A stretch of 64,000 nt of DNA, taken from NCBI GenBank assembly GCA_950097015.1, contig CATNEN010000033.1, positions 3,658,001 through 3,722,000 on the forward strand, in the 5' to 3' direction. The position numbers and the translations under genes were made by a program. Below the pieces are notes generated by a model. That model saw only the letters and a list, made by a program, of their open reading frames with translations, made no database searches and had not been told where the DNA came from. Source of the stretch: Macrostomum hystrix. Its lineage: Eukaryota; Animalia; Platyhelminthes. Position 1 is the stretch's first letter; each line of letters starts with the position of its first letter. Shown here in pieces: positions 2,051 to 62,452 of the stretch.

Positions 2051-2080
2051 GTGGGTGTACATTGGGGTGCTGGCGGGTGG

Positions 2081-2392
2081 GAGTGGCAGAGCGGTTAACG
2101 CATTTGCCTCTCGCACCAATGTCGATTTCAGCTCGATTCCGCAACGAGGCCACATTCATTTGGGGCTTGCCGTGCAGTTTACGCCCTTGAGGGCCAACCT
2201 CCAAGGCACAGTGAGAGTGTACACTGCATGACGATGAGAAAGTCAGGGCAGATGTACACGTGCGGCATCTGTGCGCGTCTGTGCTCAGGAGTCAGCGAAA
2301 TGGGCAGAACTGCCTCCTCGCTGGCTGTAGGTCCAGTATCACCGAATGATGTGCCATTGCACACAGCCCTCCTGCATTTTTATATTGGTTTT
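2081..2392 (+). mobile_element. tRNA-derived SINE-like element, copy 1
   Basis: A-box-like TGGCAGAGCGG and B-box-like GAGCTCGATTCC; 2083-2244 matches 42743-42935 (-); T-rich tail; flanked by direct repeat TGCTGGCGGGTGG (2068-2080, 2393-2405). Confidence 0.7.
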
Positions 2393-3402: not shown

Positions 3403-3750
3403 GATAGCAAATATTTAAATTTTATTAAACCAATAATAACGCATAAACCAAAACCAAAATGAAAGTATGTCGTCATTTTGAATCGATACGAAAACCGATG
3501 GACTAAGGAAGGCGTTTAAAAAGTAAAATAAAGGCCACAGCGGGTATTTAGAGATGGCGAGATTCTGAAGCAATTGAATTGCTGGATAATAGGTAAGCAG
3601 TAACGAAAGTCACGGCATTGGGTAAAGTATAGAGTGGCATCCAAAATGTAAAAAAAACACAGAAAAAATGGTTTGGCTACTTCATTAACTTATTGGCGCT
3701 GAAAATGAGCCAGAAAATCAATCACCAAACATACAGACTTTCTATAAGCC

Positions 3751-6318
3751 TCATTCAACAAAGAAACTGCAGTCCTGCGAGCTAGAGTGCAGCTCAAACA
3801 CCAGCAACAGCTGGCTAAAGTCGGGACCGCCGTTGCGCAGGCAGCGCAGTTTGACCGCAGCCCGGCGGCCAATCAGCTGATCCAAGCTGGCCAGGCGCGG
3901 ACGGCCGAGCCGGGGCAGACTGGACAAGGCGGAGGAACCTGCGGCTTGCATGGAGACAGGGATTGAGCGCTGCTGCTGCTGCTGTTGCGGACTCAGCGGG
4001 TCGCAAACCTTAGGCAAGAAAAAAGGAGAATAAAAACAATGCTGGTAAGAACACACAGTTGCCATTATCAGACACAGTTGCCATTATCACACACACAGTT
4101 GCCATTGTCAGACACACAGTTGCCATTATCACACACACAGTTGCCATTGTCAGACACACAGTTGCCATTATCACACACACAGTTGCCATTGTCAGACACA
4201 CAGTTGCCATTATCAGACACACAGTTGACATTATCACACACACAGTTGCCATTATCACACACACAGTTTCCATTATCAGACACACAGTTGCCATTATCAC
4301 ACACACAGTTGCCATTATCACACACACAGTTGCCATTATCAGACACACAGTTGCCATTATCAGACACACAGTTTCCATTGTCAGACAAAGTTGCCATTAT
4401 CACACACACAGTTGCCATTATCACACACACAGTTGCCATTATCAGACACAGTTGCCATTATCACACACACAGTTGCCATTGTCAGACACACAGTTGCCAT
4501 TATCACACACACAGTTGCCATTGTCAGACACACAGTTGCCATTATCAGACACACAGTTGACATTATCAGACACACAGTTGACATTATCAGACACACAGTT
4601 GCCATTATCACACACACAGTTGCCATTGTCAGACACACAGTTGCCATTATCAGACACACAGTTGCCATTATCAGACACACAGTTGACATTATCAGACACA
4701 CAGTTGCCATTGTCAGACACACAGTTGACATTATCAGACACACAGTTGACATTATCAGACACACAGTTGCCATTATCAGACACACAGTTGACATTATCAG
4801 ACACACAGTTGCCATTATCAGACACACAGTTGCCATTGTCAGACACACAGTTGCCATTATCACACACACAGTTGCCATTATCAGACACACAGTTGCCATT
4901 ATCAGACACACAGTTTCCATTATCAGACAAAGTTGCCATTATCACACACACAGTTGCCATTATCACACACACAGTTGCCATTATCACACACACAGTTTCC
5001 ATTATCAGACACACAGTTGCCATTATCACACACACAGTTGCCATTATCACACACACAGTTTCCATTATCAGACACACAGTTGCCATTATCACACACACAG
5101 TTTCCATTGTCAGACACACAGTTGCCATTATCACACACACAGTTGCCATTATCAGACACACAGTTGCCATTATCAGACACACAGTTTCCATTATCAGACA
5201 AAGTTGCCATTATCACACACACAGTTGCCATTATCACACACACAGTTGCCATTATCACACACACAGTTTCCATTATCAGACACACAGTTGCCATTATCAC
5301 ACACACAGTTGCCATTATCACACACACAGTTTCCATTATCAGACACACAGTTGCCATTATCACACACACAGTTGCCATTATCAGACACACAGTTGCCATT
5401 ATCAGACACACAGTTTCCATTATCAGACAAAGTTGCCATTATCACACACACAGTTGCCATTATCACACACACAGTTGCCATTATCACACACACAGTTGCC
5501 ATTATCACACACACAGTTGCCATTATCACACACACAGTTGCCATTATCAGACACACAGTTGCCATTATCAGACACACAGTTGCCATTATCACACACACAG
5601 TTGCCATTATCAGACACACAGTTGCCATTGTCAGACACACAGTTGCCATTATCAGACACACAGTTGCCATTATCAGACACACAGTTGCCATTATCAGACA
5701 CACAGCTGCCATTATCACACACACAGTTTCCATTATCAGACAAAGTTGCCATTATCACACACACAGTTGCCATTATCAGACACACAGTTGCCATTGTCAG
5801 ACACACAGTTGCCATTATCAGACACACAGTTGCCATTATCAGACACACAGCTGCCATTATCAGACACACAGCTGCCATTATCAGACACAGTTTCCAATAC
5901 ACCGGAAATGAGTTCTTACTTGAAACTCCAACGCGAGTACATCGCCAAACAGGTTCCCGCCGCAGCGCTGGAACCTTCCAAACAGCAGGCCAGGCCAGTT
6001 CGCACAGGTCGGCAGCGAGGCCAGCAACTGCGGAGTCACAAACAACGCGGCCTGGCTGAAGTCGCTGGTGTCGATGTTGCCGGCGAGGCCGCGAAAGAAG
6101 GTCGCCCAACCAAGGACATCGGTCAGGCGGGCGCAGTCGAGCCGATGTCGTGGCCAGTCTGCCCGCTGACAGTCGCGGCTGCAGTACAAGGCGTTTCTGC
6201 ACCTACTGCAGAGCTGGCAATGGCACAGAGCTGAGCAGTTCAGGCAGGGCAGGAAGCCGGGCCGCGACAGGTCGTCGGGCTCCTGCTGCTGCTGCTGCTG
6301 CTGGTGTTTGGCAGCTTC
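3751..6318 (-). CDS. MYND zinc-finger protein, ZMYND15/MSS51-like; partial, 5' exon(s) not resolved
   Basis: Exons complement(5920..6318) and (3751..4008) with phase-0 junctions ctccag|GAA, CAA|gtaaga and cctaag|GTT; MYND motif CLNC...CSRCRNALYCSRDCQRADWPRHRLDC. Family assignment is from recalled motifs. Confidence 0.7.
4051..5895. repeat. 21-bp minisatellite (GACACACAGTTGCCATTATCA) filling the MYND-gene intron, with occasional 19-bp units
   Basis: Direct inspection; 7-aa periodicity in the spurious ORFs. Confidence 0.95.
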
Positions 6319-6464
6319 CTGGAGAACGCACAAGTACGCAATATTTGAGGAGTACAAATAAATTCAATAAATAAATTGGGAACTTCGGGATAATGTACTA
6401 TTAGTGTCCTGGTGGTGTGTACTAACTAGAGGAATTTACCTTCAATATGCGGTCTAATCAATCC

Positions 6465-7195
6465 CTAGGAATCCACCATGGGAAATCCTACTCCGTGGAA
6501 ACGCCATGGGAAATCACTCCCTCTGAATACGCCATGGGAAATCCCTCCCCTGGAATACACCATGGGAAATCCCTCCCCTGGAATACACCATGGGAAATCC
6601 TACTCCGTGGAAACGCCATGGGAAATCCCTCCCTCTGAATACGCCATGGGAAATCCCTCCCCTGGAATACACCATGGGAAATCCCTCCCCTGGAATACAC
6701 CATGGGAAATCCTACTCCGTGGAAACGCCATGGGAAATCCCTCCCCTGGAATACACCATGGGAAATTCCTCCCCTGGAATACACCATGGGAAATTCCTCC
6801 CCTGGAATACACCATGGGAAATCCTACTCCGTGGAAACGCCATGGGAAATCCCTCCCCTGGAATACACCATGGGAAATCCCACCCTTGGAATACGCCATG
6901 GGAAATCCCTCCCCTGGAATACGCCATGGGAAATCCCTCCCCTGGAATACGTCATGGGAAATCCCTCCCCTGGAATACGCCATGGGAAATCCCTCCCCTG
7001 GAATACGCCATCGGATATCCGACTCCGTGGACATCAACTTCACTTCATAATATCGATCTGTCACCCACTTCACTCAATTTTATCGATCTGCCACCCACTC
7101 CACTTCATTTTATCGATCTGCCACCCACTACACTATACGCCATGGGAAATCCCACTCCTAATATACTACATGGGAAATCCTACCCCGGTGATTGA
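6465..7195. repeat. 28-bp minisatellite (CCATGGGAAATCCCTCCCCTGGAATACA) with three unit variants, degenerate after ~7020
   Basis: Direct inspection. Confidence 0.92.
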
Positions 7196-7604
7196 TATGG
7201 GGTATCCCACTGTTTATCTGATCTAAGCTTAATATATAAATTCTTTGATGAGCAGATCGAATCAGGAAAAAAAAATTCTTGAAAAAAGGCAAGCTGCGAC
7301 AGCGTGTTTTTGTCTCACCAGATGTATAAAAGTCTCCCTAGAAAAGCTTTTATTATTTCAGCAAAGCAGCATCGAAAGGATGCGCGCCGATAGCTCCCAG
7401 TCCTGTCCATGAAAAGATGGCCAACAAAAAACTGTAACGACAAAAGAGAAACAGAAAATTCAGCCGACTTCATCGAGGCAGTGACAACAAATTCATGGGA
7501 ACACACAAAAGCATTAGGTTTCATTATATATGTTATAAAACACCGGACATTATATACTCGTACGTAACTATAGAAACCGGCTTAGAGAAGGAAAATTTGG
7601 ATTT

Positions 7605-8225
7605 CGAGCTGACAGGAATTGGGATCTCAACCTACAGGAATTGGGATCTTAACCGAACAGGAATTGGGATCTTAACCGAACAGGAATTTGGATCTCAACT
7701 TACAGGAATTTGGATCTCAGCCTACAGGAATTGGGATCTTAACTTACAGGAATTTGGATCTCAACCTACAGGAATTGGGATCTTAACTTACAGGAAGTGG
7801 GATCTCAACCTACAGGAATTGGGATCTTAACCGAACAGGAATTGGGATCTCAACTTACAGGAATTGGGATCTTAACCGAACAGGAATTGGGATCTCAACC
7901 TACAGGAATTGGGATCTTAACCGAACAGGAATTGGGATCTCAACTTACAGGAATTGGGATCTTAACCGAACAGGAATTGGGATCTCAACTTTCAGGAATT
8001 GGGATATCAACCTACAGGAATTGGGATCTCAACTTACAGGAATTGGGATCTCAACCTACAGGAATTGGGATCTCAACCTACAGGAAGTTGGGATCTCAAC
8101 CTACAGGAGTTGGGATCTCAACCTACAGGAGTTGGGATCTCAATCTACAGGAGTTGGGATCTCAACCTACAGGAAGTGGGATCTCAACCTACAGGAAGTT
8201 GGGATCTCATCCTGCAGGAATGGGG
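7605..8225. repeat. 22-23-bp minisatellite (AGGAATTGGGATCTCAACCTAC)
   Basis: Direct inspection. Confidence 0.92.
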
Positions 8226-8874
8226 AATTCAAACTATTAGGAAGTGAACTTTTATCAGCTGTAACTTCTCTACCTAGTAATTTACGTGAGATGAAACTCA
8301 ATAAAACTAAATTAACAGGTCGGGCCAGGCGGTTAATTAACAGGGCTCACGGCAGGTTAAGCAGTGAGCACGCAGTATTTACATGCAAATTAAGATTGGG
8401 ATAAACAGGACAACAAGCGGTGGGAGAACATGTGAAAAAAATAAATCGACCACTTGCGCCCTGGCGACAGTGGCGGGTGAAGCAACAACAGGCCTGCCTC
8501 CGAATACCCCACAATGCGACGCTTGACAATTGAAACCCCAGTAGATAAATGCGACACAGACAAGCATATTATTGTTAGTAGTATGTATACACTAACAGTA
8601 CAGGAATAAGCTTCAAGACATTAACAAGCTAATGGGAAATCGCTTTGAAATGAATTGTCTTTAATTTAAATGATAAAAACTAGAACAACACAGAGCTAGT
8701 TTCAGCAAAGAATTTTATTGCTATCAGATAATTAGAACAGTGTGATTATGAGTTTTCTTCATTATTAGTACATAGCTTATTAAAAACAACTAATTGCTGG
8801 AGCCAGGAAACAATTTTTACTTCAGATAGCGGCCGCTGTTGTCTTTCCGCATTGGTAGAACCCGCGGACCAGCA

Positions 8875-11800
8875 TCAGTTTGTGAAGATTTCTATGTAGC
8901 GAGAGCCTGCGATTTGGGAGTCGAATGTGGGAAAATTGTTACTATTTGTTTGGGAATTTTAGTAGATGGGAATCGGCATTTCTTAATAGACGGGCGATGG
9001 GATATTTTATTGAAGGGATTAGGGATTTTTATTGACGGGCGATGGGAAATTTATTAGACGGGATTAGGGATTTTTATAGACGGACGATGGGATATTTCAT
9101 TGAAGGAATTAGGGGATTTTTATTGACGGGCGATGGGAAATTTATTAGACGGGATTAAGGATTTTTATTGACGGTCGATAGGATATTGCATTGAAGGGAT
9201 TCGGGATTTTTATTGACGGTCGATAGGATATTGCATTGAAGGGATTCGGGATTTCTATTGACGGGCGACAGGATATTGCATTGAAGGGATTAGGGATTTT
9301 TATTGACGGGCGATAGGATATTTAATAAACGGGATTAGATACTTTTTAACACTCTTGCGATGCTTACATGTTGTATATTAAATAGAAGGAATAGGGATTT
9401 TAATAGGCGAGGTTGGGATTTTTAAATAGACGGGTTTGCCAAAGTTTTTAATGGGTGAGGATAGGTAATTCTGGAGTTTTGTACAGTACACTAGTTGAGA
9501 ATAGCACTTGAAACTCACCGATAACCTTGCCATTGTACTCCGCAGCCTCGCGAACCTCGTCGGCCGACTGAAAGAAGGCATCGGCCTCACCAGAGCTCCG
9601 CCCACTGGCGTCCCTGCCAATCTGAATCCGGACTGGCCGCAGCGGCGCGAAGAATTCTTGAATTTCGGGCTCGCCAGCCGACCAGGGCAGGCCGCGCAGG
9701 TGCACGCGGAAGCCGTCGCCAACGCCAGGCCCGACGCCGCCGCGGTAGCCGCCGGCGCCGCCTCCGCCGTGATGCGGCGGCCCCTGCTGCATGAGGTGAG
9801 GCGGTCCGCTGCGAGCCTTGTGCAGGAACAAATCCACGTACCGGCTGCCCAGGTGCTGCTTGTTCTTCTCCATGGCCCGCCGGCAGTCGGCCTCCGACTC
9901 AAAGTCGACTTCGGCTTCGCCGCTAGGCCGGCCGTCCGGATTGTAGCGAATCTCAACGTGAGCTGCGTTGAGGGGCGAGAAGAACTCGCGAATGTCGGCC
10001 TCAGTGGCCGAGTATGGCAGGCCGCGCATGTGCACCCAGAAGCCGGTGGTCGAGGCCCAGTTGCTGCCCGGCATGCCGCCGCCACCGCCGCCGCCGCCGC
10101 CCCCGCCGTAGTCACGACGCATGCCAGCGCCTGGGCCGCCGCCGTAGGGACTCGGCCTGGGTCCACCGTAGCCAGGGCCACCAGGGCCGCGGACGCCGCC
10201 TCGCATCGAACCGCCGCCGCTAGCCATGGCGCCTGAATAGTCGCCCATCGGAGCGCCGTAGTCGTAGCCGTAGCCGCCGCCGCCGCCGCCGCCGCCTCCG
10301 CCATAGCCACCATGGCCATAGTAGTCGCCGTAGGGAGCCGGGCCACCAGACGCGTAGGGGTCTCCTGAAAATAAAGATCAGGTAAAACTGATTCTGGAGG
10401 GTCGTGAGCCAAAGCTGAATATTAGGAGGGTCGGGAGTCAAACCTGAAGATTAGGAGGGTCGGGAGCCAAAACCTGAAGATTTGGAGAGTCGGGAGCCAA
10501 ACCTGAAGATTTGGAGGGTCGGAGCCAAAACCTGAAGATTTGGAGGGTCGGGAGCCAAACCTGAAGATTTGGAGAGTCGGGAGCCAAAACCTAAAGATTT
10601 GGAGGGTCGGGAGCCAAAACCTAAAGATTTGGAGGGTCGGGAGCCAAAACCTGAAGATTTGGAGGGTCGGGAGCCAAAACCTAAAGATTTGGAGAGTCGG
10701 GAGCCAAACCTGAAGATTTGGAGGGTCGGGAGCCAAAACCGAAAAATTTGGAGGGTCGGGAGCCAAAACCTGAAGATTTGGAGAGTCGGGAGCCAAACCT
10801 GAAGATTTGGAGGGTCGGGAGCCAAAACCTAAAGATTTGGAGGGTCGGGAGCCAAAACCTGAAGATTTGGAGGGTCGGGAGCCAAACCTGAAGATTTGGA
10901 GGGTCGGGAGCCAAAACCTAAAGATTTGGAGAGTCGGGAGCCAAACCTGAAGATTTGGAGAGTCGGGAGCCAAACCTGAAGATTTGGAGGGTCGGAGCCA
11001 AAACCTGAAGATTTGGAGGGTCGGGAGCCAAAACCTGAAGATTTGGAGGTCGGGAGCCAAAACCTGAAGATTTGGAGGGTCGGGAGCCAAAACCTGAAGA
11101 TTTGGAGGGGTCGGGAGCAAAACATGAAGATTTAGAGGGTCCGGAGCCAAAACCTGAAGATTTGGAGGGGTCGGGAGCCGAACCTGAAGATTTGGATGTG
11201 TTGGCAGCCAAACCTGAAGATTTGGAGGGGTCGGGAGCCAAACCTGAAGATTTGGAGGGTCGGGAGCCAAACCTGAAGATTTGGATGTGTTGGCAGCCAA
11301 ACCTGAAGATTTGGAGGGGTCGGGAGCCAAACCTGAAGATTTGGAGGGTCGGGAGCCAAACCTGAAGATTTGGAGGGTCAGGAGCCAAACCTGAAGATTT
11401 AGAGTGGTCGGGAGCCAAACATGAAGATTTTTAGAGGGTTCTGCCAGAATTTGCCAGCAGTTAAACTGAAGGTGTGAAAAACATGCAAAGATCATCAGCA
11501 AGCGACCGAAGGACTCACCGCCACTAGCCAGCATCTGCTGCCTATTGGCCTCAGCGTAGGCCTCGGCCATGGAGCTGGGGAACAGCTCAATGTAGCGGCT
11601 GCCCATGTTCTGCCGATTGCAGCTACTCAAAGCGTTGCTGGCGGTCTCTGGTGCGTCGAACTGCACGTAGGCCTCGCCGCTGGGCCGGCCGTCCTGATTG
11701 TACACCATCAAGATGCCGTCCTTCACCACGTGATGACCCCGAAAGAATTCCCTGATGCTGTCAAAGTCGGCGGAGAACGGCAGGCCGCGCATGCGCAGCA

Positions 11801-12194
11801 CCGGCTCGCGGTTTTGCCCGCCGTAGCCTGGCTGCTGGGGCCGGCCGGCCACGGCTGCGCCAGCGCCTCCGGGCACGCCGGCTCCGGGGACGGCCCGGCC
11901 GAGCTCGGCCTCGCTGGACTCGAACAGTTCAACGTATCGTCGGCCCATGTGCTGCCTATCGTGCTTCATAGCGGTCGCGGCGTCGTCGGGTGTTTCAAAG
12001 ACAACGTAGGCCTCGCCAGAGGGCCGGCCCAGCTGGTCGCGAGTCATATGGATGCCCCGCTCGCCCCGGCTGATGCTGCAGTCGTCAAAGAATTTCAAAA
12101 TGTCACCGGCTGTTGAGTCGAATGGCAGGCCGCGCATCCGAATGACACAGGTGGGGCCGCCGCCGGAGGAATTGTTGGCATTGTTGTAGCGCAT
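8875..12194 (-). CDS. HNRNPF/H: hnRNP F/H (glorund/GRSF1 family) RNA-binding protein with four qRRMs, 517 aa
   Basis: join complement(11519..12194, 9519..10364, 8875..8906) = 1554 nt, all GT-AG and phase-consistent; four RGLP[FYW]...GEA...G.RY[VI][ED][LI]F qRRMs plus GY-rich linker; 3' splice site ttttcag 8 nt before the ATG. Confidence 0.93.
8985..9345. repeat. Degenerate ~45-bp tandem repeat in the last intron of hnRNP F/H
   Basis: Recurrent gattagggatttttattgacgggcga units. Confidence 0.8.
10395..11440. repeat. 29-30-bp minisatellite (GGGTCGGGAGCCAAAACCTGAAGATTTGGA) filling an hnRNP F/H intron
   Basis: Direct inspection; produces the repetitive tail of ORF 10422..12368. Confidence 0.95.
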
Positions 12195-14560: not shown

Positions 14561-16061
14561 GTCTGAGCACACTACTAGGCCTATGACATCTGAGTAGGGG
14601 CCTAACATGCAATTGACTCAAAGACACTGTCAGTCATCTGTTCATTGGTTGTTAGTCACATTGTTTCTTGGTTGTTATACAAAACTGTCGTTAACTGTCG
14701 TTTTAAAAACAGTTTGAATTAAACGTGCGAAACTAGAAGATTGCCCAAGTCTGCTTTAGCTGAATCTATTGAAAACTGATAGCCCTTTGAGAAGCTCACA
14801 TTATCATGAAATCTAGTGACATTATTAATTTATATAACACTTAGGCATGGCTTTTTAGCTGGTTATATGCTCACCACATAACCACATATATATTTGTAAG
14901 TAAATTTTTTAACATTGGCAATGAGGATAATGCACAAATTTTAGCTCTTCTGGAATTACTTTAAATTCTGTCGATCGATTACTAATACGTCATTCAACCA
15001 CTTTGCTGATAAAGTCACATGTGCAGACTAAGATGAGCCATAGTTAAACTTTGAATAATTAGTTGAGTAGAATATATTACAAAGAATGGTAGAAACAATT
15101 TTAACTATAAAAAAGTTTAGTTAACGTCAATTTAAATAAGTAAAAACGTGAAGATCAATATATTTTCATTGCCATTCAATAAAAAATTTGGTTTAAGCAA
15201 GTTACAATTTTCTGATGACACATCACTTTCTGCGATTTTTTACCGTAATCCAATAAAAAAGTTTTTGTTAAATTGCTTTTGCATAAAAGTTTTCTACATT
15301 TTTAACTTTAACAAAATCGCTTTTTTACGCGCGAAGCGAAGCTTAATACGATTCATCATTAAATTATTAATTTTCTTATATGTTCGAACCATATCTCAGC
15401 ACATAATTAAGACAATAAATTTAAATATGCGTCTTCTTTACTTAATAGATTGCTTATGTAAAAATTATTTTTTTAAACATTTTAAGATTAAATGAGATTT
15501 AAAAGAATTTATTTAGTAACAATAACACTTATATTCTTAATATTAATTATTATTAATATAACAGTAATATAAGCTAACATCGTGTTTTTGTTAGCCAAGA
15601 CAGTTTTCTTTTTCCAAATGCTGATGCAAGTAAAACAATGCAAGCACAGCATGTAAAAGTAAATTTAAGCTGTCCAGAAAATAGAACTAAAAAATACCAA
15701 ATTACTGAGTGGCACTGGCAGTTGCTATAGGTAGATGTTTTTTGTCTGCTGCCTGTTCATCCTCTGCTCTATTTTCTGCTTAAATAAAAAAATTATTTTT
15801 GTCTGTTGATCAAATTCTCATGTATTTCCACTCATTTCTTGTTTGTTTAAATTAAAGGATCATAACATCTTTTTAGCTTGAGTTAGGGCCTCTAACTACA
15901 AAAATTCATGTACATATTGAATGAGTTTCTATATTACATTTAGAGTTGATTTTTAGTTTAAGTACTAGCAAGTTTTGCCCCCCTTCGGGGAGCAGAAATA
16001 CTTTTAATTCGTCTAGTATATACTTTTTAGCAGCTGAATTTACAGCTTTTTAAAGCTACAA

Positions 16062-16980
16062 TGAACCCCCAGTTGACAATGATCCCCCAGTTGATGATGA
16101 TCCCCTAATTGATGATGATCCCCCAGTTGACAATGATCCCCCAGTTGACAATGATCCCCCAGTTGACAATGAACCCCCAGTTGACAATGAACCCCCAGTT
16201 GACAATGATCCCCCAGTTGACAATGATCCCCCAGTTGTCAATGATCCCCCAGTTGACAATCATCCCACAGTTGACAATGATCCCCCAGTTGACAAAGATC
16301 CCCCAGTTCACAATGATCCCCCAGTTGATGATGAACCCCCAGTTGACCATGATCCCCCATTTGATGATGATTCCCCAGTTGACAATTATCCCCCAGTTGA
16401 CAATGATCCCCCTGTTGACAATGATCCCACAGTTGACAATGATCCCCCAGTTGACAAAGATCCCCCAGTTCACAATGATCCCCCAGTTGATGATGATCCC
16501 CCAGTTGATGATGATCCCCAGTTGACAATGATCCCCCAGTTGACAATGAACCCCCAGTTGACAATGAACCCCCAGTTGACAATGATCCCCCAGTTGACAA
16601 TGATCCCCCAGTTGTCAATGATCCCCCAGTTCACAATGATCCCCCAGTTGATGATGAACCCCCAGTTGACAATGATCCCCCAGTTGACAATGATCCCACA
16701 GTTGACAATGATCCCCCATTTGACAAATATCCCCCAGTTCACAATGATCCCCCAGTTGATGATGATCCCCCAGTTGATGATGATCCCCAGTTGACAATGA
16801 TCCCCCAGTTGACAATGATCCCCAAGTTGACAATGATCCCCCAGTTCACAATGATCCCCCAGTTGACAATTATCCCCCAGTTGACAATTATCCCCCAGTT
16901 TACCAAGATCCTCCAATTGACGATTATCCCCCAGTTTACCTTGATCCCCATTTTGATGATGACTCCCCAGTTGACGTTGA
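16062..16980. repeat. 18-bp satellite (GACAATGATCCCCCAGTT) inside Helitron A
   Basis: Direct inspection; occasional 17-bp units. Confidence 0.95.
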
Positions 16981-16984
16981 TTTT

Positions 16985-19150
16985 TCAAACGCTGGGTTAG
17001 CCATGATTCAAACCCAGGTTTCGCCATGTTTTAAACCCTGGTGGGCTATGATTCAAACTCTCGTTTTACCATGATTCAGACGCTGCTTTTGCAATGATTC
17101 AAACTCTGGTTTAGCCATGATTCAGACTCTAGTTTAGCCATGATTCAAACTCTGGTTTGGCCATGATTCAGACTCTGGTTTAGCCATGATTCAAACTCTG
17201 GTTTAGCCATGATTCAAACTCTAGTTTAGCCATGATTCAGACTCTCGTTTAGCCATGATTCAAACTCTGGTTTAGCCATGATTCAAACTCTGGTTTGGCC
17301 ATGATTCAAACTCGGGTTTCGCCTTGATTCAAATTTAGCCATGATTCAGACTCTGGGTTAGCCATGATTCAAACGTTGGTTTAGCCATGATTCAAACTCT
17401 GGTTCAGCCATGATTCAAACTCTGGTTTAGCCATGATTCAAACTCTGGTTTAGCCATGATTAAACTCTGGTTTAGCCATGATTCAAAGTCTGCTTTAGCC
17501 ATGATTCAAACTCTGTTTTAGCCATGATTTAAACTCTGGTGTAGCCATGATTCAGACGCTGGTTTAGCCATGATTCAAACGCTGGTTTAGCCATGATTCA
17601 AACTCTGGTTTAGCCATGATTCAAACTCTGGTTTAGCCATGATTCAAACTCTGGTTTAGCCATGATTCAAAGTCTAGTTTAGCCATGATTCAGACTCTCG
17701 TTTAGCCATGATTCAAACTCTGGTTTAGCCATGATTCAAACTCTGGTTTAGCCATGATTCAAAGTCTAGTTTAGCCATGATTCAGACTCTCGTTTAGCCA
17801 TGATTCAAACTCTGGTTTAGCCATGATTCAAACTCTGGTTTGGCCATGATTCAAACTCGGGTTTCGCCTTGATTCAAATTTAGCCATGATTCAGACTCTG
17901 GGTTAGCCATGATTCAAACGTTGGTTTAGCCATGATTCAAACTCTGGTTCAGCCATGATTCAAACTCTGGTTTAGCCATGATTCAAACTCTGGTTTAGCC
18001 ATGATTAAACTCTGGTTTAGCCATGATTCAAAGTCTGCTTTAGCCATGATTCAAACTCTGTTTTAGCCATGATTTAAACTCTGTTTTAGCCATGATTTAA
18101 ACTCTGGTGTAGCCATGATTCAGACGCTGGTTTAGCCATGATTCAAACGCTGGTTTAGCCATGATTCAAACTCTGGTTTAGCCATGATTCAAACTCTGGT
18201 TTAGCCATGATTCAGACTCTCGTTTAGCCATGATTCAAACTCTGGTTTAGCCATGATTCAAACTCTGGTTTAGCCATGATTCAAACGCTGGTTTAACCAT
18301 GATTCAAAATCTGGTTTAGTCATAATTAAAACTCTGATTTTGCCAGGATTCAAACTCTGGGTAAGCCATGATTCAAACGCTGGTTTAGCCATGATTCAAA
18401 CGCTGGTTTAGCCTTTATTCAAACTCTGGTTTAGCCATGATTCAAACTCTGGTTGGCCATGATTCAAACTCTAGTTTAGCCATGCTGATGATGATGGTTT
18501 TGCCATGATTCAGACTCTGGTTTAGCCATGATTCAAACTCTGGTATAGCCATGATTTAGTCTCTGGTTTAGCCATGATTCAAACTCTGGTTTAGCCATGA
18601 TTCAGACGCTGGTTTAGCCATGATTCAAACTCTGGTTTAGCCATGATTGAAACTCTGGTTTTGCCATGATTCAGACTCTGGTTTAGCCATGATTCAAACT
18701 CTGGTTTAGCCATGGTTCAAACTCTGGTTTAGCCATGATTCAGACTATGGTTTAGCCATGATTCAGACTCCAGTTTTGCCATGATTCAGACTCTAGTTTA
18801 GCCATGATTCAGACTCGGGTTTAGCCATGATTCAGACTCTAGTTTAGCAATGATTCAAGATCTGGTTTAGCCATGATTCAAACTCTGGTTTAGCCATGAT
18901 TCAAACTCTGGTTTTGCCATGTTTCAGACTCTGGTTTAGCCATGATTCAGAATCTAGTTTAGCCATGATTCAGACTCTAGTTTAGCCATGATTCAAACTC
19001 TGGTTTAGCCATGATTCAGACGCTGGTTTAGCTATGATTCAAACTCTGGTTTTGCCATGATTCAGACGCTGGTTTAGCCATGATTGAAACTCTGGTTTAG
19101 CTATGATTCAAACTCTGGTTTTGCCATGATTCAGACGCTTGTGTGCTATG
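16985..19150. repeat. 23-bp satellite (GCCATGATTCAAACTCTGGTTTA) inside Helitron A
   Basis: Direct inspection. Confidence 0.95.
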
Positions 19151-19326
19151 ATTTATGATATTTTATTTACGAAATGAAAAAAATAAATTAAAATAGTCTT
19201 CAATCACTACTGGCTGAAAATTAGTCTAAATGACTAGCAAGTTATGCCCCCCTTCGGGGAGCAGAAATACTTTTAATTCGTCTAGTATATACTTTTTAGC
19301 AGCTGAATTTACAGCTTTTTATAGCT

Positions 19327-20270
19327 ACAATGAACCCCCAGTTGACAATGATCCCCCAGTTGACAATGATCCCCCAGTTGATGATGATCCCCTAGTTGAT
19401 GATGATCCCCCAGTTGACAATGATCCCCCAGTTGACAATGAACCCCCAGTTGACAATGATCCCCCAGTTGACAATGAACCCCCAGTTGACAATGAACCCC
19501 CAGTTGACAATGATCCCCCAGTTGACAATGATCCCACAGTTGACAATGATCCCCCAGTTGACAATGATCCCCCAGTTGACAATGATCCCCCAGTTGACAA
19601 AGATCCCCCAGTTGACAATGATCCCCTAGTTGACAATGATCCCCCAGTTGACAATGATCCCCCAGTTGACAATGATCCCCCAGTTCACAATGATCCCCCA
19701 GTTGATGATGACTCCCCATTGATGATGATCCCCAGTTAACAATGTTCCTCCAGTTGACAATGATCCCCCAGTTGACAATGATCCCCCAGTTGATGATGAT
19801 CCCCTAGTTGATGATGATCCCCCAGTTGATGATGATCATCCAGTTGACAATGATCCCCCAGTTGACAATGATCCCCCAGTTGACAATGATTCCCCAGTTG
19901 ACAATGATCCCGCCCGTTGACAATGATCCCACAGTTGACAATGAACCCCCAGTTGACAATGATCCGCCAGTTGATAATGATCCCCCAGTTGACAATGATC
20001 CCCCAGTTGACAATGATCCCCCAGTTGACAATGATCCCCCAGTTGACAATTATCCCCCAGTTTACCATGATCCCCCAGTTGACGATTATCCCCCAGTTGA
20101 CCATTTCCCCCTAGTTGACAATGATCCCCCAGTTGACAATGACCCCCCAGTTGACAATGATCACCCAGTTGACAATTATCCCCCAGTTTACCATGATCCC
20201 CCAGTTGACGATTATCCCCCAGTTTACCATGATCCCCATTTTGATGATGACTCCCCAGTTGACGTTGATT
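19327..20270. repeat. 18-bp satellite inside Helitron B
   Basis: Same unit as 16062-16980. Confidence 0.95.
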
Positions 20271-20274
20271 TTTC

Positions 20275-22690
20275 AAACGCTGGGTTAGCCAAGATTCAAA
20301 CTCTGGTTTAGCCATGATTCAAACGATAGTTTAGCTGGTTTAGCCATGATGTAAACGATGGTTTAGCCATGATTCAAACGATGGTTTAGCCATGATTCAA
20401 ACGATGGTTTAGCCATGATTCAAACGATGGTTTAGCCATGATTCAAGATCTGGTTTAGCCATGATTCAGACCCTGGTTTAGCCATGATTCAAACTCTGGT
20501 TTAGCCATGATTCAAACGATGGTTTAGCCATGATTCAAACGATGGTTTAGCCATGATTCAAACGCTGGTTTAGCCATGATTCAGACTTTGGTTTAGCCAT
20601 GATTCAAACGATGGTTTTGCCATGATTCAAACTCTGGTTTAGCCATGATTCAGACTCTGGTTTAGCCATGATTCAAACAATGGTTTAGCCATGATTTAAA
20701 CGATGGTTTAGCCATGATTCAAACTCTGGTTTAGCCATGATTCAAACTCTGGTTTAGCTATGATTCAGACTCTGGTTTAGCCATGATTCAGACTCTGGTT
20801 TAGCTATGATTCAAACTCTGGTTTAGCCATGATTGAGACTCTGGTTTAGCCATGATTGAGACTCTGGTTTAGCTATGATTCAGACTCTTGTTTAACCATG
20901 ATTAAAACTCAGTTTTAGCAATGATTCGAACTCTGGTTTAGCAATGATTCAGAATCTGGTTTAGCCATGATTCAGACTCTGGTTTAGCCATGATTCAAAC
21001 AATGGTTTAGCCATGATTTAAACGATGGTTTAGCCATGATTCAAACTCTGGTTCGCTATGATTCAAACGATGCTTTAGCCATGATTCAAACAATGGTTTA
21101 GCCATGATTTAAACAATGGTTTAGCCATGATTCAAACAATGGTTTAGCCATGATTCAAACAATGGTTTAGCCATGATTTAAACGATGGTTTAGCCATGAT
21201 TCAAACAATGGTTTAGCCATGATTCAAACGATGGTTTAGCCATGATTTAAACTCTGGTTTAGCCATGATTCAAACTCTGGTTTAGCCATGATTCAAACAA
21301 TGGTTTAGCCATGATTTAAACGATGGTTTAGCCATGATTCAAACTCTGGTTTAGCCATGATTCAAACTCTGGTTTAGCCATGATTCAAACGATGGTTTAG
21401 CCATGATTCACACTCTGGTTTAGCCATGATTCAAACTCTGGTTTAGCAATGATTCAAACTCTGGTTTAGCCATGATTGAGACTCTGGTTTAGCCATGATT
21501 CAGACTCTGGTTTAGCCATGATTCAAACTCTGGTTTAGTCATGATTCAGACTCTGGTTTAGCCATGATTCAGACTCTGGTTTAGCTATGATTCAGACTCT
21601 GGTTTAGCCATGATTCAGACTCTGGTTTAGCTATGATTCAAACTCTGGTTTAGCCATGATTGAGACTCTGGTTTAGCCATGATTGAGACTCTGGTTTAGC
21701 TATGATTCAGACTCTTGTTTAACCATGATTAAAACTCAGTTTTAGCAATGATTCGAACTCTGGTTTAGCAATGATTCAGAATCTGGTTTAGCCATGATTC
21801 AGACTCTGGTTTAGCCATGATTCAAACAATGGTTTAGCCATGATTTAAACGATGGTTTAGCCATGATTCAAACTCTGGTTCGCTATGATTCAAACGATGC
21901 TTTAGCCATGATTCAAACAATGGTTTAGCCATGATTTAAACAATGGTTTAGCCATGATTCAAACAATGGTTTAGCCATGATTCAAACAATGGTTTAGCCA
22001 TGATTTAAACGATGGTTTAGCCATGATTCAAACAATGGTTTAGCCATGATTCAAACGATGGTTTAGCCATGATTCAAACTCTGGTTTAGCCATGATTCAA
22101 ACTCTGGTTTAGCCATGATTCAAACAATGGTTTAGCCATGATTTAAACGATGGTTTAGCCATGATTCAAACTCTGGTTTAGCCATGATTCAAACTCTGGT
22201 TTAGCCATGATTCAAACGATGGTTTAGCCATGATTCACACTCTGGTTTAGCCATGATTCAAACTCTGGTTTAGCAATGATTCAAACTCTGGTTTAGCCAT
22301 GATTGAGACTCTGGTTTAGCCATGATTCAGACTCTGGTTTAGCTATGATTCAAACTCTGGTTTAGTCATGATTCAGACTCTGGTTTAGCCATGATTCAGA
22401 CTCTGGTTTAGCTATGATTCAGACTCTGGTTTAGCCATGATTCAGACTCTGGTTTAGCTATGATTCAAACTCTGGTTTAGCCATGATTGAGACTCTGGTT
22501 TAGCCATGATTGAGACTCTGGTTTAGCTATGATTCAGACTCTTGTTTAACCATGATTAAAACTCAGTTTTAGCAATGATTCGAACTCTGGTTTAGCAATG
22601 ATTCAGAATCTGGTTTAGCCATGATTCAGACTCTGGTTTAGCCATGATTCAAACTCTATTTTTGCATTATTCAAACTCAGATTTGCAATG
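20275..22690. repeat. 23-bp satellite inside Helitron B, with an 827-bp higher-order repeat
   Basis: Variant ATTAAAACTCAG at 20901, 21728 and 22555. Confidence 0.95.
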
Positions 22691-23362
22691 ATGTATGATA
22701 TTTTATTTACGAAATGAAAAAAATAAATTAAAATAATCTTCAATCACTACTGGCTAAAAATTAGTTTAAAATTTTCAGTGCAGAATCGAACCCTAGCCTA
22801 GACTTACTTATTCCTAGTGCCTACACATCGGCTATTCCGACTGTTGGTTAGTGGGTGCGGAATTCAGCCTTATAAAATGAATTCTCAAAGTTCTGGCTTT
22901 GTACAATGAAGTAAGAAAATAGAGTACACTCAGTTGTGTACATTTATTTCCAATTTGTCTCCAGAGTGCAGGCTTCAAATTCAATCAGCTAGGGGTTGTT
23001 GCGCAATTTGACGATGCAATTCTAATTCAGTGGCAGTGAGTTAAAATTCTCAATAGGCCAAGATGGTTTGACCTTTGACAAAATCATGTTTTTCGAATAT
23101 TTAATCCCCTTAGCAATGGAGTTAAGCTTAATAAAAATACGTGTAAAATTCTGCCCATATTTCGCATATTTTGGTGAAGAAATGGTGAAAATCGGTTGAG
23201 CCGTTCGGGAGAAAATCAATTACAACCAAGTAAGTAAACAAGTAAACAGTTCATTTTTAGTATATTAGACTAGCAAGTTTTGCCCCCCTTCGGGGAGCAG
23301 AAATACTTTTAATTCGTCTAGTATATACTTTTTAGCAGCTGAATTTACAGCTTTTTAAAGCT

Positions 23363-24250
23363 ACAATGAACCCCCAGTTGACAATGATCCCCCAGTTAAT
23401 GATGATCCCCTAGTTGACGATGATCCCCCAGTTGACAATGATCCCCCAGTTGACAATGATCCCCCAGTTGACAATGAACCCCCAGTTGACAATGAACCCC
23501 CAGTTGACAATGATCCCCCAGTTGACAATGATCCCCCAGTTGAAAATGATCCCACAGTTGACAATGATCCCCCAGTTGACAAAGATCCCCCAGTTCACAA
23601 TGAACCCCCAGTTCACAATGTACCCCCAGTTGACAATGAACCCCCAGTTGACAATGAACCCCAGTTGACAATGATCCCCCAGTTGACAATGATCCCCCAG
23701 TTGACAATGATCCCACAGTTGACAATGATCCCCCAGTTGACAAAAATCCCCCAGTTCACAATGAACCCCCAGTTGACAATGATCCCCCAGTTGACAATGA
23801 TCCCCCAGTTGACAATGATCCCCCAGTTGACAATGATCCCCCAGTTGACAATGAACCCCCAGTTGACAACGATCCCCCAGTTGACAATGATCCCCCAGTT
23901 GACAATGATCCCACAGTTGACAAAGATCCCCCAGTTCACAATGATCCCCCAGTTGATGATGATCCCCCAGTTGATGATGATCCCCAGTTGATGATGATCA
24001 CCCAGTTGACAATGATCCCCAAGTTGACCATGATCCCCCATTTGATGATGATTCCCCAGTTGACAATTATCCCCCAGTTGACCAATACCCCCTAGTTGAC
24101 AATGATCCCTCAGTTCACAATGATCCCCCAGTTGACAATGATCCCCCAGTTGACAATTATCCCCCCAGTTTACCAAGATCCTCCAGTTGATGATTATCCC
24201 CCAGTTTACCTTGATCCCCATTTTGAGGATGACTCCACAGTTGACGTTGT
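23363..24250. repeat. 18-bp satellite inside Helitron C
   Basis: Same unit as 16062-16980. Confidence 0.95.
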
Positions 24251-24254
24251 TTTT

Positions 24255-26670
24255 CAAACACTGGGTTAGCCAAGATTCAAACTCAGGTTTCGCCATGTTT
24301 TAAACCCTGCTGGGCTATGATTCAAACTCTCGTTTTACCATGATTCAGACTCTGGTTGACTATGATTCAAACCGTGGTTTGGCCATGATTCAAACTCTGG
24401 TTTAGCCATGATTCAAACGCTGTTTTTGCAATGATTCAAACTCTGGTTTAGCCATGATTCAGACTCTAGTTTAGCCATGATTCAGACTCTAGTTTAGCCA
24501 TGATTCAAACTCTGGTTTAGCCATGATTCAAACTCTGGTTAGCTATGATTCAAACTCTGGATTCACCTTGATTTAAATTTAGCCATGATTCAGACTCTGG
24601 TTTAGCCATGATTCAAACGTTGGTTTAGCCATGATTCAAACCTTGGTTTAGCCATGATTCAAACTCTGGTTTAGCCATGATTTTAACTTTAGTTTAGCCA
24701 TGATTCAGACGCTGTGATGATTCAAAGTCTGCTTTAGCCATGATTCAAACTCTGTTTTAGCCATGATTTAAACTCTGGTGTAGCCATGATTCAGACGCTG
24801 GTTTAGCCATGATTTAAACTCTGGTGTAGCCATGATTCAGACGCTGGTTTAGCCATGATTCAAACTCTGGTTAGCTATGATTCAAACTCTGGTTTCGCCT
24901 TGATTCAAACTCTGGTTTTGCCATGATTCAAACTCTGGTTTAGCCATGATTCAAACTCTGGTTTAGCCATGATTCAAACTCTGGTTAGCTATGATTTAAA
25001 CTCTGGATTCGCCTTGATTTAAATTTAGCCATGATTCAGACTCTGGGTTAGCCATGATTCAAACGTTGGTTTAGCCATGATTCAAACCTTGGTTTAGCAA
25101 TGATTTTGAATCATCCTTCAAACTCTGGGTTAGCCATGATTCAAACGCTGGTTTAGCCATGATTCCAACTCTGGTTTAGCCATGATTTAAGCTCTGGTTT
25201 AGCCATGATTCAAGCTCTGGTTTAGCCATGATTCTAACGCTGGTTTAGCCATGATTCTAACGCTGGTTTAGCCATGATTCAAACTCTGGTTTAGCCATGA
25301 TTTAAGCTCTGGTTTAGCCATGATTCAAGCTCTGGTTTAGCCATGATTCAAACTCTGGTTTAGCCATGATTCAAACTCTGGTTTAGCCATGATTCTAACG
25401 CTGGTTTAGCCATGATTGAAACTCTGGTTAGCCATGATTCAAACTCTGGTTTAGCCATGATTCAGACTCCGGTTGACTATGATTTAGACTCCGGTTGACT
25501 ATGATTCAAACTCTGGTTTAGCCATGATTCAAGCTCTGGTTTAGCCATGATTCAAACTCTGGTTTAGCCATGATTTAAACTCTGGTTTAGCCATGATTCA
25601 TACTCTGGTTTAGCCATGATTTAAGCTCTGGTTTAGCCATGATTCAAGCTCTGGTTTAGCCATGATTCAAGCTCTGGTTTAGCCATGATTCAAACTCTAG
25701 TTTAGCCATGATTCAAACTCTGGTTTAGCCATGATTCAAACTCTGGTTTAGCCATGATTCAAACTCTGGTTTAGCCATGATTCTAACGCTGGTTTAGCCA
25801 TGATTCTAACGCTGGTTTAGCCATGATTCAAACTCTGGTTTAGCCATGATTCAAGCTCTGGTTTAGCCATGATTCAAGCTCTGGTTTAGCCATGATTCAA
25901 ACTCTGGTTTAGCCATGATTCAAACTCTGGTTAGCTATGATTCAAACTCTGGTTTAGCCATGATTCAGACTCTGGTTTAACCATGATTCAAACTCTGGTT
26001 TGCCATGATTCAAGCTCTGGTTTAGCCATGATTCAAACTCTAGTTTAGCCATGATTTAAACTCTGGTTTAGCCATGATTCAAACGCTGGTTTTGCCATGA
26101 TTCAAACTCTGGTTTTGCCATGATTCAAACTCTGGTTTAGCCATGATTCAAACTCTGGTTTAGCCATGATCCAAACTCTGGTTTAGCCATGATTCAGACT
26201 GTGGTTTAGCCATGATTCAAACTCTGGTTTAGCCATGATTCAAACTCTGGTTTAGCCATGATTCAAACTCTGGTTTAGCCATGATTCAAACTCTGGTTTA
26301 GCCACGATTCAAACTCTGGTTTAGCCATGATTCAAACTCTTGTTTAGCCATGATTCAAACTCTGGTTTAGCCATGATTCAAACTCCGGTTTAGCCATGAT
26401 TCAAGCTCTGGTTTAGCTTGAACTCTGGCTGGCTATGATTCAAGCCATAGTTTAGCCATGATTCAAACGCTGGTTTAGCCATGATTCAAACTCTTGTTTA
26501 GCCATGATTCAAACTCTGGTTTAGCCATGATTCAAACGCTGGTTTAGCCATGATTCAAACGCTGGGTTAGCCATGATTCAAACTCTGGTTTAGCCATGAT
26601 TCAAACTCTGGTTTAGCCATGATTCAAACTCTGCTTTTGCCATGATTTAAACTCTGGTTTGCTTTGAAAG
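24255..26670. repeat. 23-bp satellite inside Helitron C
   Basis: Same unit as 16985-19150. Confidence 0.95.
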
Positions 26671-27962
26671 ATGATATTTTATTTACGAAATGAAAAAAAT
26701 AAATTTAAATAATCTTCAGTCACTACTGGCTGAAAATTAGTCTAAATTATTTGACGCAGTGCAGAATCGAACCCTAGCCTAGCCTAAACTATTCCTAGTG
26801 CCTACACATCGGCTATTCCGACTGTTGGTTAGTGGGTGCAAAAATCAGCCTTATAAAATGAATTCTTAAAGTTCTGGCTTTGTACAATGAAGTAAGAAAA
26901 TAGAGTACACTCAGTCTTGCGGTTTGTTGTGTACATTTATTTCCAATTTGTCTCCAGAGTGCAGGCTTTTAACTCAGTCAGCTAGTGGGTGTTGTGCAAG
27001 TTGATGATGCAATTCTAACTCAGTGGCAGTCAGTGAATGAAATTCTCAATAGGCCAAGATAGTTTGACCTTTGAAATGGTCAAAAAACATGTTTTTCGAA
27101 TATTTAATCCCCTTAGCAATAAAGTTAAGCTTAATAAAAATACGTGTATAATTGTCCCCATATTTAGCATCTTTTGGTGAAGAAATGGTGAAAATCGGTT
27201 GAGCCGTTCGGGAGAAAATCAATTACAAGCAACCAACCAAGCATTTCATTTTTAGTATATTAGAAGATTTGACGCAGTGCAAAATCGAACCCAAGCCTAG
27301 CCTAACCTATTCCTAGTGCCTACACATCGGCTATTCCGACTGTTGATTGGTGGGTGCAAAAATCTGCCTTATAAAATTAATTCTCAAAGTTCTGGCTTTG
27401 TACAATGAAGTAAGAAAATAGAGTACACTCAGTCTCGCGGTTTGTTGTGTACATTTATTTCCAATTTGTCTCCAGAGTGCAGGCTTTTAACTCAGTCAGC
27501 TAGTGGGTGTAGCGCAAGTTGATGATGCAATTCTAACTCAGTGGCAGTCAGTGAATGAAATTCTCAATAGGCCAAGATAGTTTGACCTTTGAAATGGTCA
27601 GAAAACATGTTTTTCGAATATTTAATACCCTTAGCAATAAAGTTAAGCTTAATAAAAATACGTGTATAATTGTCCCCATATTTGGCATGTTTTGGTGAAG
27701 AAATAGTGAAAATCGGTTGAGCTGTTCGGGAGAAAATCAATTACAACCAACCAAGCAAGCATTTCATTTTTAGTATATTAGAAGAAGAATTTTATTAAAA
27801 AACAGTGCTGTTAATCTCAAATCCATTACTTTTTTTTATATTTCTCAAATGTGCAATCATTGATTTCTTCTTTTGATTTCATTGCATAATTTTTATATGG
27901 TCTTTTTATTATACTAAGTAGTAAGATTTAAGATAAGATAGCAAAGACTTAGTACTACTAAG

Positions 27963-29044
27963 GGTGATTTTCAACTTTCCCACTCTAAATTATTTTACGA
28001 TGAATTCGAGTATGGGGGAGTTAAGTAAGAAAACATAAAAATAAGGGAAGTCACACAGCAAGGTATTAGTGGGCGATCCAGTACAAGATGTTGCCGAACT
28101 GCTTAGTGGAGAACTGGTGGTGCCACACGAATTCCTGCAGGTATGTGTCGAACAGCTGATCAGACATACCATGCATGGCACAGAATTTGGCCTTGCAATT
28201 ACCCCACATTCCCTCGACCTGGTTGGTATGAATGGATGGGTCATTTGGGTCGCAGAAATGTAGCATGTGGTTCACGGTGGCATGGTTGCCAGGCTATGCA
28301 TGATAGCCAGCCCACTGATCTGTGATGACTCTCATTCCAGGTAGGACATGTTGGGCAATCAGCAGTAGGAGAGTATCGGCTCGGCAGTCAGTGACTGGGA
28401 TGAGGACACAGCAACTGGTACCACGCTCAACCATGCCAAGGACCCAGTGGCCCTTGTGATACGCACCACGGTGGTACTTGCAGTGCATGAATTTGGACTC
28501 ATCGAATACAACATCGATGCCAGGTCCACTGAGCTGCGTTGGGTAGTCAATGAGGTACTGGGCGCATATGTTGCTTACAAAGTTAAACCAATCGACAAGG
28601 TTGTCCCTGGTGACACGGGTCTCATGTGCTGTATCTGTCAGGCATATATTGGCAGCCCAGAAATAGATTATGTCGATCAGCTGCATAAGGCTCAGGTGGC
28701 TACCCTCGAAGAATGAGCCCAGCCTAATCAACCGGTGCCTCTTGCAGTTTTTGCAGGACCAGCAGACACCATCAGCATAGTCCCGCCCAGCTCGACATTG
28801 GTAACCACACTGCTGGCCTGGGCATGCCATGGAATTGCGCAGCAGGCCTTGGTTGCAAGCCATTCAATTCCTGTCTCACCAGTCAGCCTGTCAGCTCCCA
28901 TTGGTTTACGTCCAGGTCGCATAGCTCAATTGTGGGCCTCAGAAGGTCAGGGTTGACAATAAACTGTGTTGCCTGTGGTTGGCCAGCCATGATCAGCTGA
29001 AAAAACACATAAAATAATTTAGAGCAGGAAAGTCGAAAATCGCC
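27963..29044 (-). mobile_element. Merlin (IS1016/IS1595-like) DNA transposon, full-length 1082 bp, defective
   Basis: 18-bp TIRs GGTGATTTTCAACTTTCC (27963-27980) / GGAAAGTCGAAAATCGCC (29027-29044); 8-bp TSD CTACTAAG (27955-27962, 29045-29052); internal ISXO2-like transposase. Confidence 0.92.
28051..28990 (-). pseudogene. Merlin/ISXO2-like DDE transposase pseudogene
   Basis: Motifs GPG..V.FDESKF..KYHRG, WVLGMVER, ITDQWAGY, TVNH, HTNQVEGMW, YLQEFVW; in-frame stops at 28294-28296 and 28066-28068; frameshift(s) near 28850-28890. Confidence 0.9.
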
Positions 29045-31240: not shown

Positions 31241-37821
<6,581 letters not shown>

Positions 37822-38519
37822 AGCCTGGAGTCCCAAAGATTGTGTTCGGATGTTGTATAGCGCCAGGATTTTGTAAGATGCTGTTAAGAAAATAATGGTT
37901 GCAATATGGCGGCTGTGCCTTTTTTTTTAGCTGAGAACTAAAATGTACTTTTTAATTGATCAGTTTTGTACAGTTGCACTGTCTCTCATCTCTCATTTGT
38001 GCCCGGTATGTTCAAACTGCTGCAGAATTAAAAAAAAATTCACAAAAATTCTGTACAGTGCATGCTCATTTGCATGTCATTGTTCCGTGTGTTTTGTTAA
38101 TATGCCCTTGTTTAAGCACAACTCCACAACCGGTTCTACGCAGACAATGCCCCTCTATTATTCATATTGTAGTTTTTATATTCTATTTTTTCATATTCCC
38201 GATTATTAGTTTTTCCTCGGATCCATTTTCCCGGCATTTAAAAGTTTGCTTTGGCATCTGTTGCAAAATGGTTGACTCCAATTTGAATGCAGCGTCAATT
38301 CAAAGTTTTCTCTGTTCGCACATTTTTAGTTTTCGAATGTGTTAGAGGCGCTGATTTTGTTGTACAGAACTGGGTATATGTTTATAGCTGTTAGTCATTT
38401 TTAATTTCTTTTACACTTCTACTTCTTTTATTTTAACTAAACTTTTCATCTCTTTTCCTGTTATTGTTTTATTGCATGCTCTTTCCTGAATTATTCTGCA
38501 CTTTTCATTGATAAAAAAT

Positions 38520-53175: not shown

Positions 53176-62452
<9,277 letters not shown>

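Follow-up and report, generated by a model that had tools for sequence, protein, structure and literature searches.

Introduction

The targets documented so far for canonical Helitrons (HLE1) amount to a site between A and T and to AT-richness, and for Helraiser the AT-rich bias is strongest on the flank adjoining the 3' end of the element (PMC4778049). Tandem Helitrons are on record from bat, maize, rice, Drosophila and fungi (Metarhizium), and one of two origins proposed for them is that an element inserts into the 5' end of a copy already in place (PMC5148889, PMC5876387). Satellite cargo has been described in the Helentrons of Crassostrea gigas and the DINE-1/DINE-TR1 Helentrons of Drosophila, and in Paramecium Helitrons between the left terminal sequence (LTS) and the right terminal sequence (RTS) (PMC7492417, PMC4067079, PMC13085455). 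Here we analyse a stretch of 64,000 nt from the flatworm Macrostomum hystrix (assembly GCA_950097015.1, contig CATNEN010000033.1, positions 3,658,001 to 3,722,000 of the forward strand), hereafter the window, in which the nested block at 15965-27789 is very probably made of three non-autonomous canonical Helitrons of one abundant M. hystrix family. Tandem and satellite-carrying Helitrons are already published; what this locus adds is an internal insertion hot spot and a flank motif. The paper describing the M. hystrix genome makes no mention of Helitrons or satellites (PMC10468722), which is consistent with the proposal, made in an earlier note on this DNA, that the family is undescribed.

Results

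An exact-motif scan of the window yielded matches on the minus strand alone. The 5' end TCTAATATACTAAAAATG was found three times, with its first base at 27782 (copy A), 27264 (copy C) and 23269 (copy B), and so was the hairpin GCTCCCCGAAGGGGGGC, which in each case precedes an 8-nt spacer and a CTAG whose last base is at 15965 in A, 19234 in B and 23270 in C. The three minus-strand units with common ends that the earlier note had described were thereby confirmed to the base. The units measure 3784 nt (A, once its parts are joined), 4036 nt (B) and 3998 nt (C). Read in the orientation of the elements, the 5' part of A (515 nt) is followed by C, then by B and finally by the 3' part of A, with the 3' end of C lying directly against the 5' end of B in a head-to-tail junction (CTAG|TCTAAT).

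Every unit holds one 18-bp array of about 50 copies and one 23-bp array of about 100 copies, as found by Tandem Repeats Finder. On the minus strand, the 3' part of copy A (15965..19233) comprises the RTS tail with hairpin and CTAG (15965-16057), the 18-bp array (16058-16975), the 23-bp array (16984-19133) and a unique stretch (19134-19233) that stops at the break. Copy B is complete (19234..23269), with its RTS at 19234-19326, the arrays at 19327-20263 (18 bp) and 20272-22692 (23 bp) and a 5' unique region with the LTS at 22693-23269. Copy C, also complete (23270..27267), has the same parts at 23270-23362, 23363-24219, 24253-26660 and 26661-27264, plus an extra TCT (27265-27267) before its canonical start. 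The 5' part of A runs from its canonical TCTAATATAC start to the break (27268..27782). The nest proposed beforehand thus held, but the 5' boundary of A did not lie where it had been placed, at 27789: the canonical start is at 27782, and the TCTTCT ahead of it (27783..27788) is an extension. Heads of this (TCT)n kind are found elsewhere in the family, at free 5' ends as well as within runs of elements joined head to tail, hereafter trains (loci L005, L011, L015, L019 and L025, C1:10799360 and C1:19905157, where C and L numbers denote contigs and fetched loci).

Copy A is interrupted by the C-B pair at CGTCAAA^TCATTTAG, and its halves, once joined, give a colinear alignment with C that runs through the break. 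At this position more than 40 paralogues on other contigs are uninterrupted and read CGTCAAATCATTTAGACTAAT, so the C-B insertion took place precisely between A and T, without duplication and without deletion. The empty site lacking a target site duplication that had been expected is therefore a clean A^T site. At the 3' junction of the nest (19220..19241, minus strand) the CTAG of B is joined to TCATTTAGACTAAT of A, an LTS-like target of the form T-N8-CTAAT, and the outer 3' flank of copy A (15941..15964, minus strand) reads TACTTAAACTAAAAAT..., with T-N7-CTAAA.

The termini place the elements with the canonical Helitrons. All three copies begin TCTAATATAC, with the 5' TC of HLE1, and all three end in GCTCCCC-GAA-GGGGGGC, 8 nt and CTAG, which agrees with the HLE1 pattern of CTRR after a short hairpin. 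The hairpin folds with -7 kcal/mol (z = -2.1), and at the nested site insertion was at A^T without target site duplication, as in HLE1. No significant terminal inverted repeat was found between the 5' end and the 3' region, the best match being equalled by 281 of 2000 shuffles; a direct or inverted similarity between them that had first been suspected by eye was not significant. The tRNA-like look of GGTTCGATTCTGCAC in the 5' region was likewise discarded, as ARAGORN predicted no tRNA and Rfam gave only sub-threshold matches, inside the satellites. None of the 67 genome-wide matches to Helitron_like_N (PF14214) falls in the window, nor does any PIF1 (PF05970) match among the 150 listed of 163, in agreement with the view that no Rep or helicase is encoded here.

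The family was then followed through the M. hystrix assembly (220,453,370 bases in 42 contigs); flanks and layouts were sampled at 72 fetched loci, from terminus and Rep searches. Searches with the 5' piece (522 bp) and with the 3' tail (93 bp) gave more than 600 candidates apiece, on most contigs. The 5' 20-mer (TCYAMTATAC...) has 715 exact matches and the 3' 22-mer 371, as opposed to 0 for the reversed control patterns of both termini, which sets the termini far above chance. The dispersed copies with identical ends that had been predicted are thus present on most contigs. Nearly all sampled copies share a constant layout of a 5' region (about 610 bp), the 23-bp array, the 18-bp array and, at the 3' end, a tail of 93 bp that holds the hairpin and CTAG, indicating that the satellites are a constant cargo of variable copy number. 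A T follows CTAG in 19 of 19 free 3' ends among the fetched loci. The base before the 715 5' ends is G in 377 (after a CTAG), A in 171 and C or T in 167.

Candidate autonomous partners were found by coordinates. On contig C1 there are at least seven same-strand series of LTS, Helitron_like_N, PIF1 and RTS, 14.2-30.2 kb long, in which the Pif1 domain lies 2.5-2.9 kb beyond the Rep domain: C1:10163711-10177944 (14.2 kb), C1:10780544-10799369 (18.8 kb), C1:3511283-3531437 (20.2 kb), C1:12987223-13007695 (20.5 kb), C1:16435991-16456938 (20.9 kb), C1:8283404-8305135 (21.7 kb) and C1:2772588-2802840 (30.2 kb). These supply, at the level of coordinates, the Rep-helicase (RepHel) elements with the same termini that had been anticipated. 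Between the 5' region of B and the 5' end of the 20.9-kb element the identity is 98%. The Rep fragment of another RepHel gene (L069/L070), located by coordinates about 8 kb upstream of a 3' end of the same type, matches Helraiser (PDB 7LCC) with an E value of 7.5e-50. A further candidate for the 5' part of an autonomous element, L023, was rejected, its open reading frames being translated satellite without real domains. Taken together, the TCTAATATAC-type ends, their dispersal, the T flanks, the A^T empty site and the RepHel genes lying between like termini by coordinates support the Helitron identity first proposed for the block.

The free 3' flanks of the family are alike: a T, then 5-9 mostly A/T bases, then CTAAA. 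The start of the element itself has the layout T-N8-CTAAA. Genome-wide, T-N5-9-CTAAA follows 233 of the 371 exact 3' ends, trains included. A manual count of the first 100 of these motif matches gave 42 free ends and 2 ambiguous ones, the rest being trains; by extrapolation from these 100, the motif would be carried by about 100 of about 238 free ends, roughly 42%. The exact motif is present in 8 of 20 free ends from the fetched loci and the window, and in 0.6-0.9% of background A^T sites. An A at position -3 of the 5' flank is suggestive only, coming from nine sites, and is not claimed here.

The same signal is found at the nested site. The nest occupies the sole A^T-N5-9-CTAA[AT] site within the first 620 nt of A, and since the motif is present in the uninterrupted paralogues at this position, it was part of the target and was not brought in by the insert. 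The same internal junction, with CTAG joined to TCATTTAGACTAAT, occurs also at C1:16711972 and C32:14157. By coordinates, the nest on C1 contains a different guest pair, with 5' ends at 16705857 and 16706187 and the host start at 16705358. A separate observation comes from a subfamily that forms a train of 3.4-kb period (L043-L045, C5:5156556-5163491), in which the 10 nt TCTAATATAC stand at the hot spot as CGTCAA-TCTAATATAC-TTTTAAACTAAT; they look like the remnant of an earlier insertion there. The earlier note had spoken of self-targeting. Insertion into members of the same family was indeed found, but it would be more apt to say that the target is a short motif similar to the 5' end of the element.

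The three copies differ in their relationships. In the 5' region, A and C are 95.7% identical, A and B 92.4% and B and C 93.1%, the last two copies being separated also by several indels. Copies on three other contigs match C with 98.7% identity and the 5' region of B is 99% identical to C2:7214723 and C7:9642264, so B and C are not local duplicates. The closest relative of A reaches 96% at best. This pattern of identities fits an older host copy A, into which two younger guests from different subfamilies would have come.

Nested and head-to-tail arrangements are common and ordinary in the M. hystrix genome. RTS|LTS junctions within 14 nt number 139, and 93 of the 100 listed are exact; the other 7 are TC-less or shortened. 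At C1:25816456-25848518, a three-element train with a period of 14,753 bp (4902 + 4773 + 5078) is present twice, and at C14:695496-720891 the spacings alternate between 3689 and 5021 bp. Whole trains have thus been tandemly duplicated on C1 and C14, which indicates that unequal exchange is a further way in which trains grow.

Satellite-like arrays with a period of about 337 bp were also observed (L058:1904-3093, C2:7234547-7238160, C38:7546760-7551970 and C7:10001544-10007471), and these are complete mini-Helitrons joined exactly end to start. Each unit has a like 5' end with about 180 nt homologous to the 5' region of the family, and a 3' part with another hairpin, GGCTACCC-AGA-GGGTAGC, followed by CTAG.

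In the rest of the window, a generic scan found no further 5' ends of the family; its 3' part required a perfect stem and missed all three known ends, being uninformative on 3' ends. More than 25 minisatellite arrays with units of 14-45 bp lie in 1-12000 and 31800-63800 (for example 4051-5889, 38516-40535, 48402-49702, 50202-52591 and 54981-56870); none has the 5' terminus of the family, and they are not shown to be Helitron cargo. Host exons on the plus strand encode a guanylate-kinase domain (32025-32468) and PDZ domains (34086-34841 and 36871-37821), which suggest a MAGUK/MAGI-type gene with minisatellites in its introns, and an ABC1 kinase-like exon lies at about 42.3 kb, within 41919-42917, also on the plus strand. 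Just beyond the 5' end of A, on the minus strand, a fragment of a DDE transposase (28294-28863) with an IS1595/ISXO2-like domain (E 1.4e-6) fits a Merlin-type transposon; the stretch around it, 27963-29044, contains 16 in-frame stops.

Discussion

On balance we lean towards the view that the transposase of this family picks its integration nick by the signal of its own 5' end, a T 5-9 nt before CTAAA, and that trains and nests are a result of target choice, that is of end mimicry, and not of rolling-circle concatemers. The non-coding copies would presumably be copied in trans by the Rep-Pif1 transposases of the 14-30 kb relatives with the same ends. Following the model for Helraiser (PMC4778049, PMC5876387), Rep would nick ahead of the 5' TC, the helicase would unwind one strand as far as the hairpin-CTAG signal, and the single strand would be joined into a target nicked by Rep before a T. 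In this family the nick may be guided by the sequence 3' of it, the chosen T usually lying 5-9 nt upstream of CTAAA. The start of a resident copy would then be the best target, giving exact CTAG|TC trains, and the internal look-alike TCATTTAGACTAAT in the 5' region of A could act as a hot spot that took an insertion. The most likely order of events is that A was in place first, that B inserted into A and that C inserted afterwards onto the start of B.

Several points weigh against this proposal. The commonest spacing in the free flanks is N6, as opposed to N8 at the start of the element, and despite this mismatch 93% of the train junctions listed fall exactly at the start of an element and not 2 nt further in. 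On the element strand, each unit of the 23-bp satellite reads TCATGGCTAAACC... with an A before it, hence A^T-N5-CTAAA, so that the arrays (16984-19133, 20272-22692 and 24253-26660) offer the target layout many times over; the satellite was seen as a target in none of about 60 sampled free flanks. Since it carries the layout and was never seen targeted, the motif is not sufficient. Moreover, the CTAAA rule was framed after 18 flanks had been viewed, and the genome-wide count includes those loci. The base before the element is also less regular than the base after it: where no CTAG comes before the 5' end, the preceding base is A in only 51% of cases (171/338), with (TCT)n heads accounting for part of the others. 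The expectation of A^T sites at other copies therefore held for the 3' flank, which is always T, but the 5' flank is A at only one free end in two. The proposal also does not account for the additional TCT in front of C and A. Finally, transposition activity and the nicking rule are drawn by analogy from the Helraiser model, and the autonomous partners, placed by coordinates only, are candidates as regards intact frames and identical ends.

It is possible, although we consider it rather unlikely, that C and B moved as a dimer, the 3' signal of C having been bypassed and the process having stopped at the 3' signal of B, with a single insertion into A. End-bypass is an established behaviour of Helitrons (PMC4778049), donor dimers exist, as trains are very common in this genome, and a single event would account for the single clean target site. 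However, the C2 copy that is 99% identical to B (C2:7214723-7215304) follows a CTAG but is outside the listed AACTTGCTAG-type junctions, so the C-B dimer is not seen at that locus, and the nest at the same internal site on C1 has, by coordinates, a different pair of elements.

It appears improbable that the family should be placed with the Helitron2/Helentron group (HLE2) instead of the canonical Helitrons. Satellite-carrying non-autonomous elements are best known from oyster and Drosophila Helentrons (PMC7492417, PMC4067079), and C or T, not A, stands before about half of the 5' ends without a preceding CTAG. Nevertheless, there is no significant inverted repeat between the 5' end and the 3' region, the termini have the form TC...CTAG and only the 3' terminus has a hairpin, insertion at the nested site was between A and T, and the linked Rep fragment matches the canonical Helraiser at the E value given above.

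An origin of the head-to-tail pair as a rolling-circle concatemer of one circular intermediate is scarcely tenable. Helitron circles with joined ends do exist, and concatemers have been proposed as an origin of tandem Helitrons (PMC5876387, PMC5148889). The units of a concatemer would be identical, whereas B and C are only 93% alike in the 5' region, with several indels, and each has much closer relatives elsewhere.

Very little credence can likewise be given to local duplication, an alternative that had been named beforehand, in which a unit with satellites would have been copied segmentally or by unequal crossover. The tandem duplication of whole trains on C1 (14,753-bp period) and C14 (3689/5021-bp spacing) indicates that such events occur in this genome. 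In the present block, however, neighbouring units are not each other's closest relatives, as local amplification would have them: A, B and C are 92-96% alike and closer to copies on other contigs than to each other. The ends are exact and the halves of A join seamlessly, so this alternative is contradicted. An assembly artefact from collapsed or mis-joined repeats, conceivable in 12 kb of near-repeats in a long-read assembly, is hardly credible, given units that differ by 4-8% plus indels, which makes mis-joining unlikely, base-exact junctions, a nest at the same site at two other loci and an assembly reported as highly contiguous and polished (PMC10468722).

With insertion guided by a start-like signal as the preferred reading, the nest can be regarded as a clean natural experiment, in which dozens of uninterrupted host paralogues fix the empty site exactly and the sole start-like motif in the 5' region of A was struck on at least three independent occasions. 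Considered with the flank counts from the whole genome, the nest speaks for a defined target signal in a eukaryotic Helitron. A literature search of limited coverage found no report of a defined 3'-flank motif mirroring the 5' end of a Helitron. If true, end mimicry would be a simple, sequence-level and testable account of the origin of tandem Helitrons, and the family would make its own landing pads while spreading. Much of the apparent dispersed minisatellite DNA in M. hystrix is Helitron cargo, which is relevant to repeat annotation in Macrostomum.

Comparison with known systems

Like the satellite carriers of oyster, Drosophila and Paramecium, the flatworm family has tandem repeats between conserved ends, spread by rolling-circle transposition. 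Inverted repeats and TT targets are found in the oyster and Drosophila elements, which are HLE2, whereas the flatworm family is structurally canonical HLE1 and, unlike them, has two distinct arrays, of 23 bp and 18 bp, whose order is fixed.

A likeness is also seen to IS608 and IS91, bacterial HUH single-strand transposons, which integrate without target duplication. The target sequence of IS608 matches the sequence at the cleavage site of the transposon end. Its integration is known to be site-specific (PMC5876387). IS608 reads the target by base pairing with the element, and the likeness to the flatworm family is one of integration behaviour.

In structure the family resembles the canonical Helitrons (Helibat/Helraiser and HelibatN), which share the 5' TC, the 3' CTAG, the hairpin about 8 nt before the end, the T after the 3' end, the A^T target and the lack of target duplication and of terminal inverted repeats. 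Their non-autonomous copies are mobilised in trans by a Rep-Pif1 transposase, as would presumably be the case in the flatworm. Helraiser, too, has its strongest target bias beside the 3' end (PMC4778049). The differences lie in target and content. The bias of Helraiser is one of AT-richness only, whereas the flatworm family has a defined CTAAA 5-9 nt past the nick, mirroring its own start. Unlike Helraiser and Helibat, about half of the 5' ends of the flatworm family stand in exact trains, and its interior consists of two minisatellite arrays and not of captured gene fragments.

With the published tandem Helitrons the flatworm trains have in common the exact end-to-start junctions. Unlike those arrays, they mix subfamilies and sizes, and their flank statistics yield an LTS-like motif, which favours targeted insertion over concatemers.

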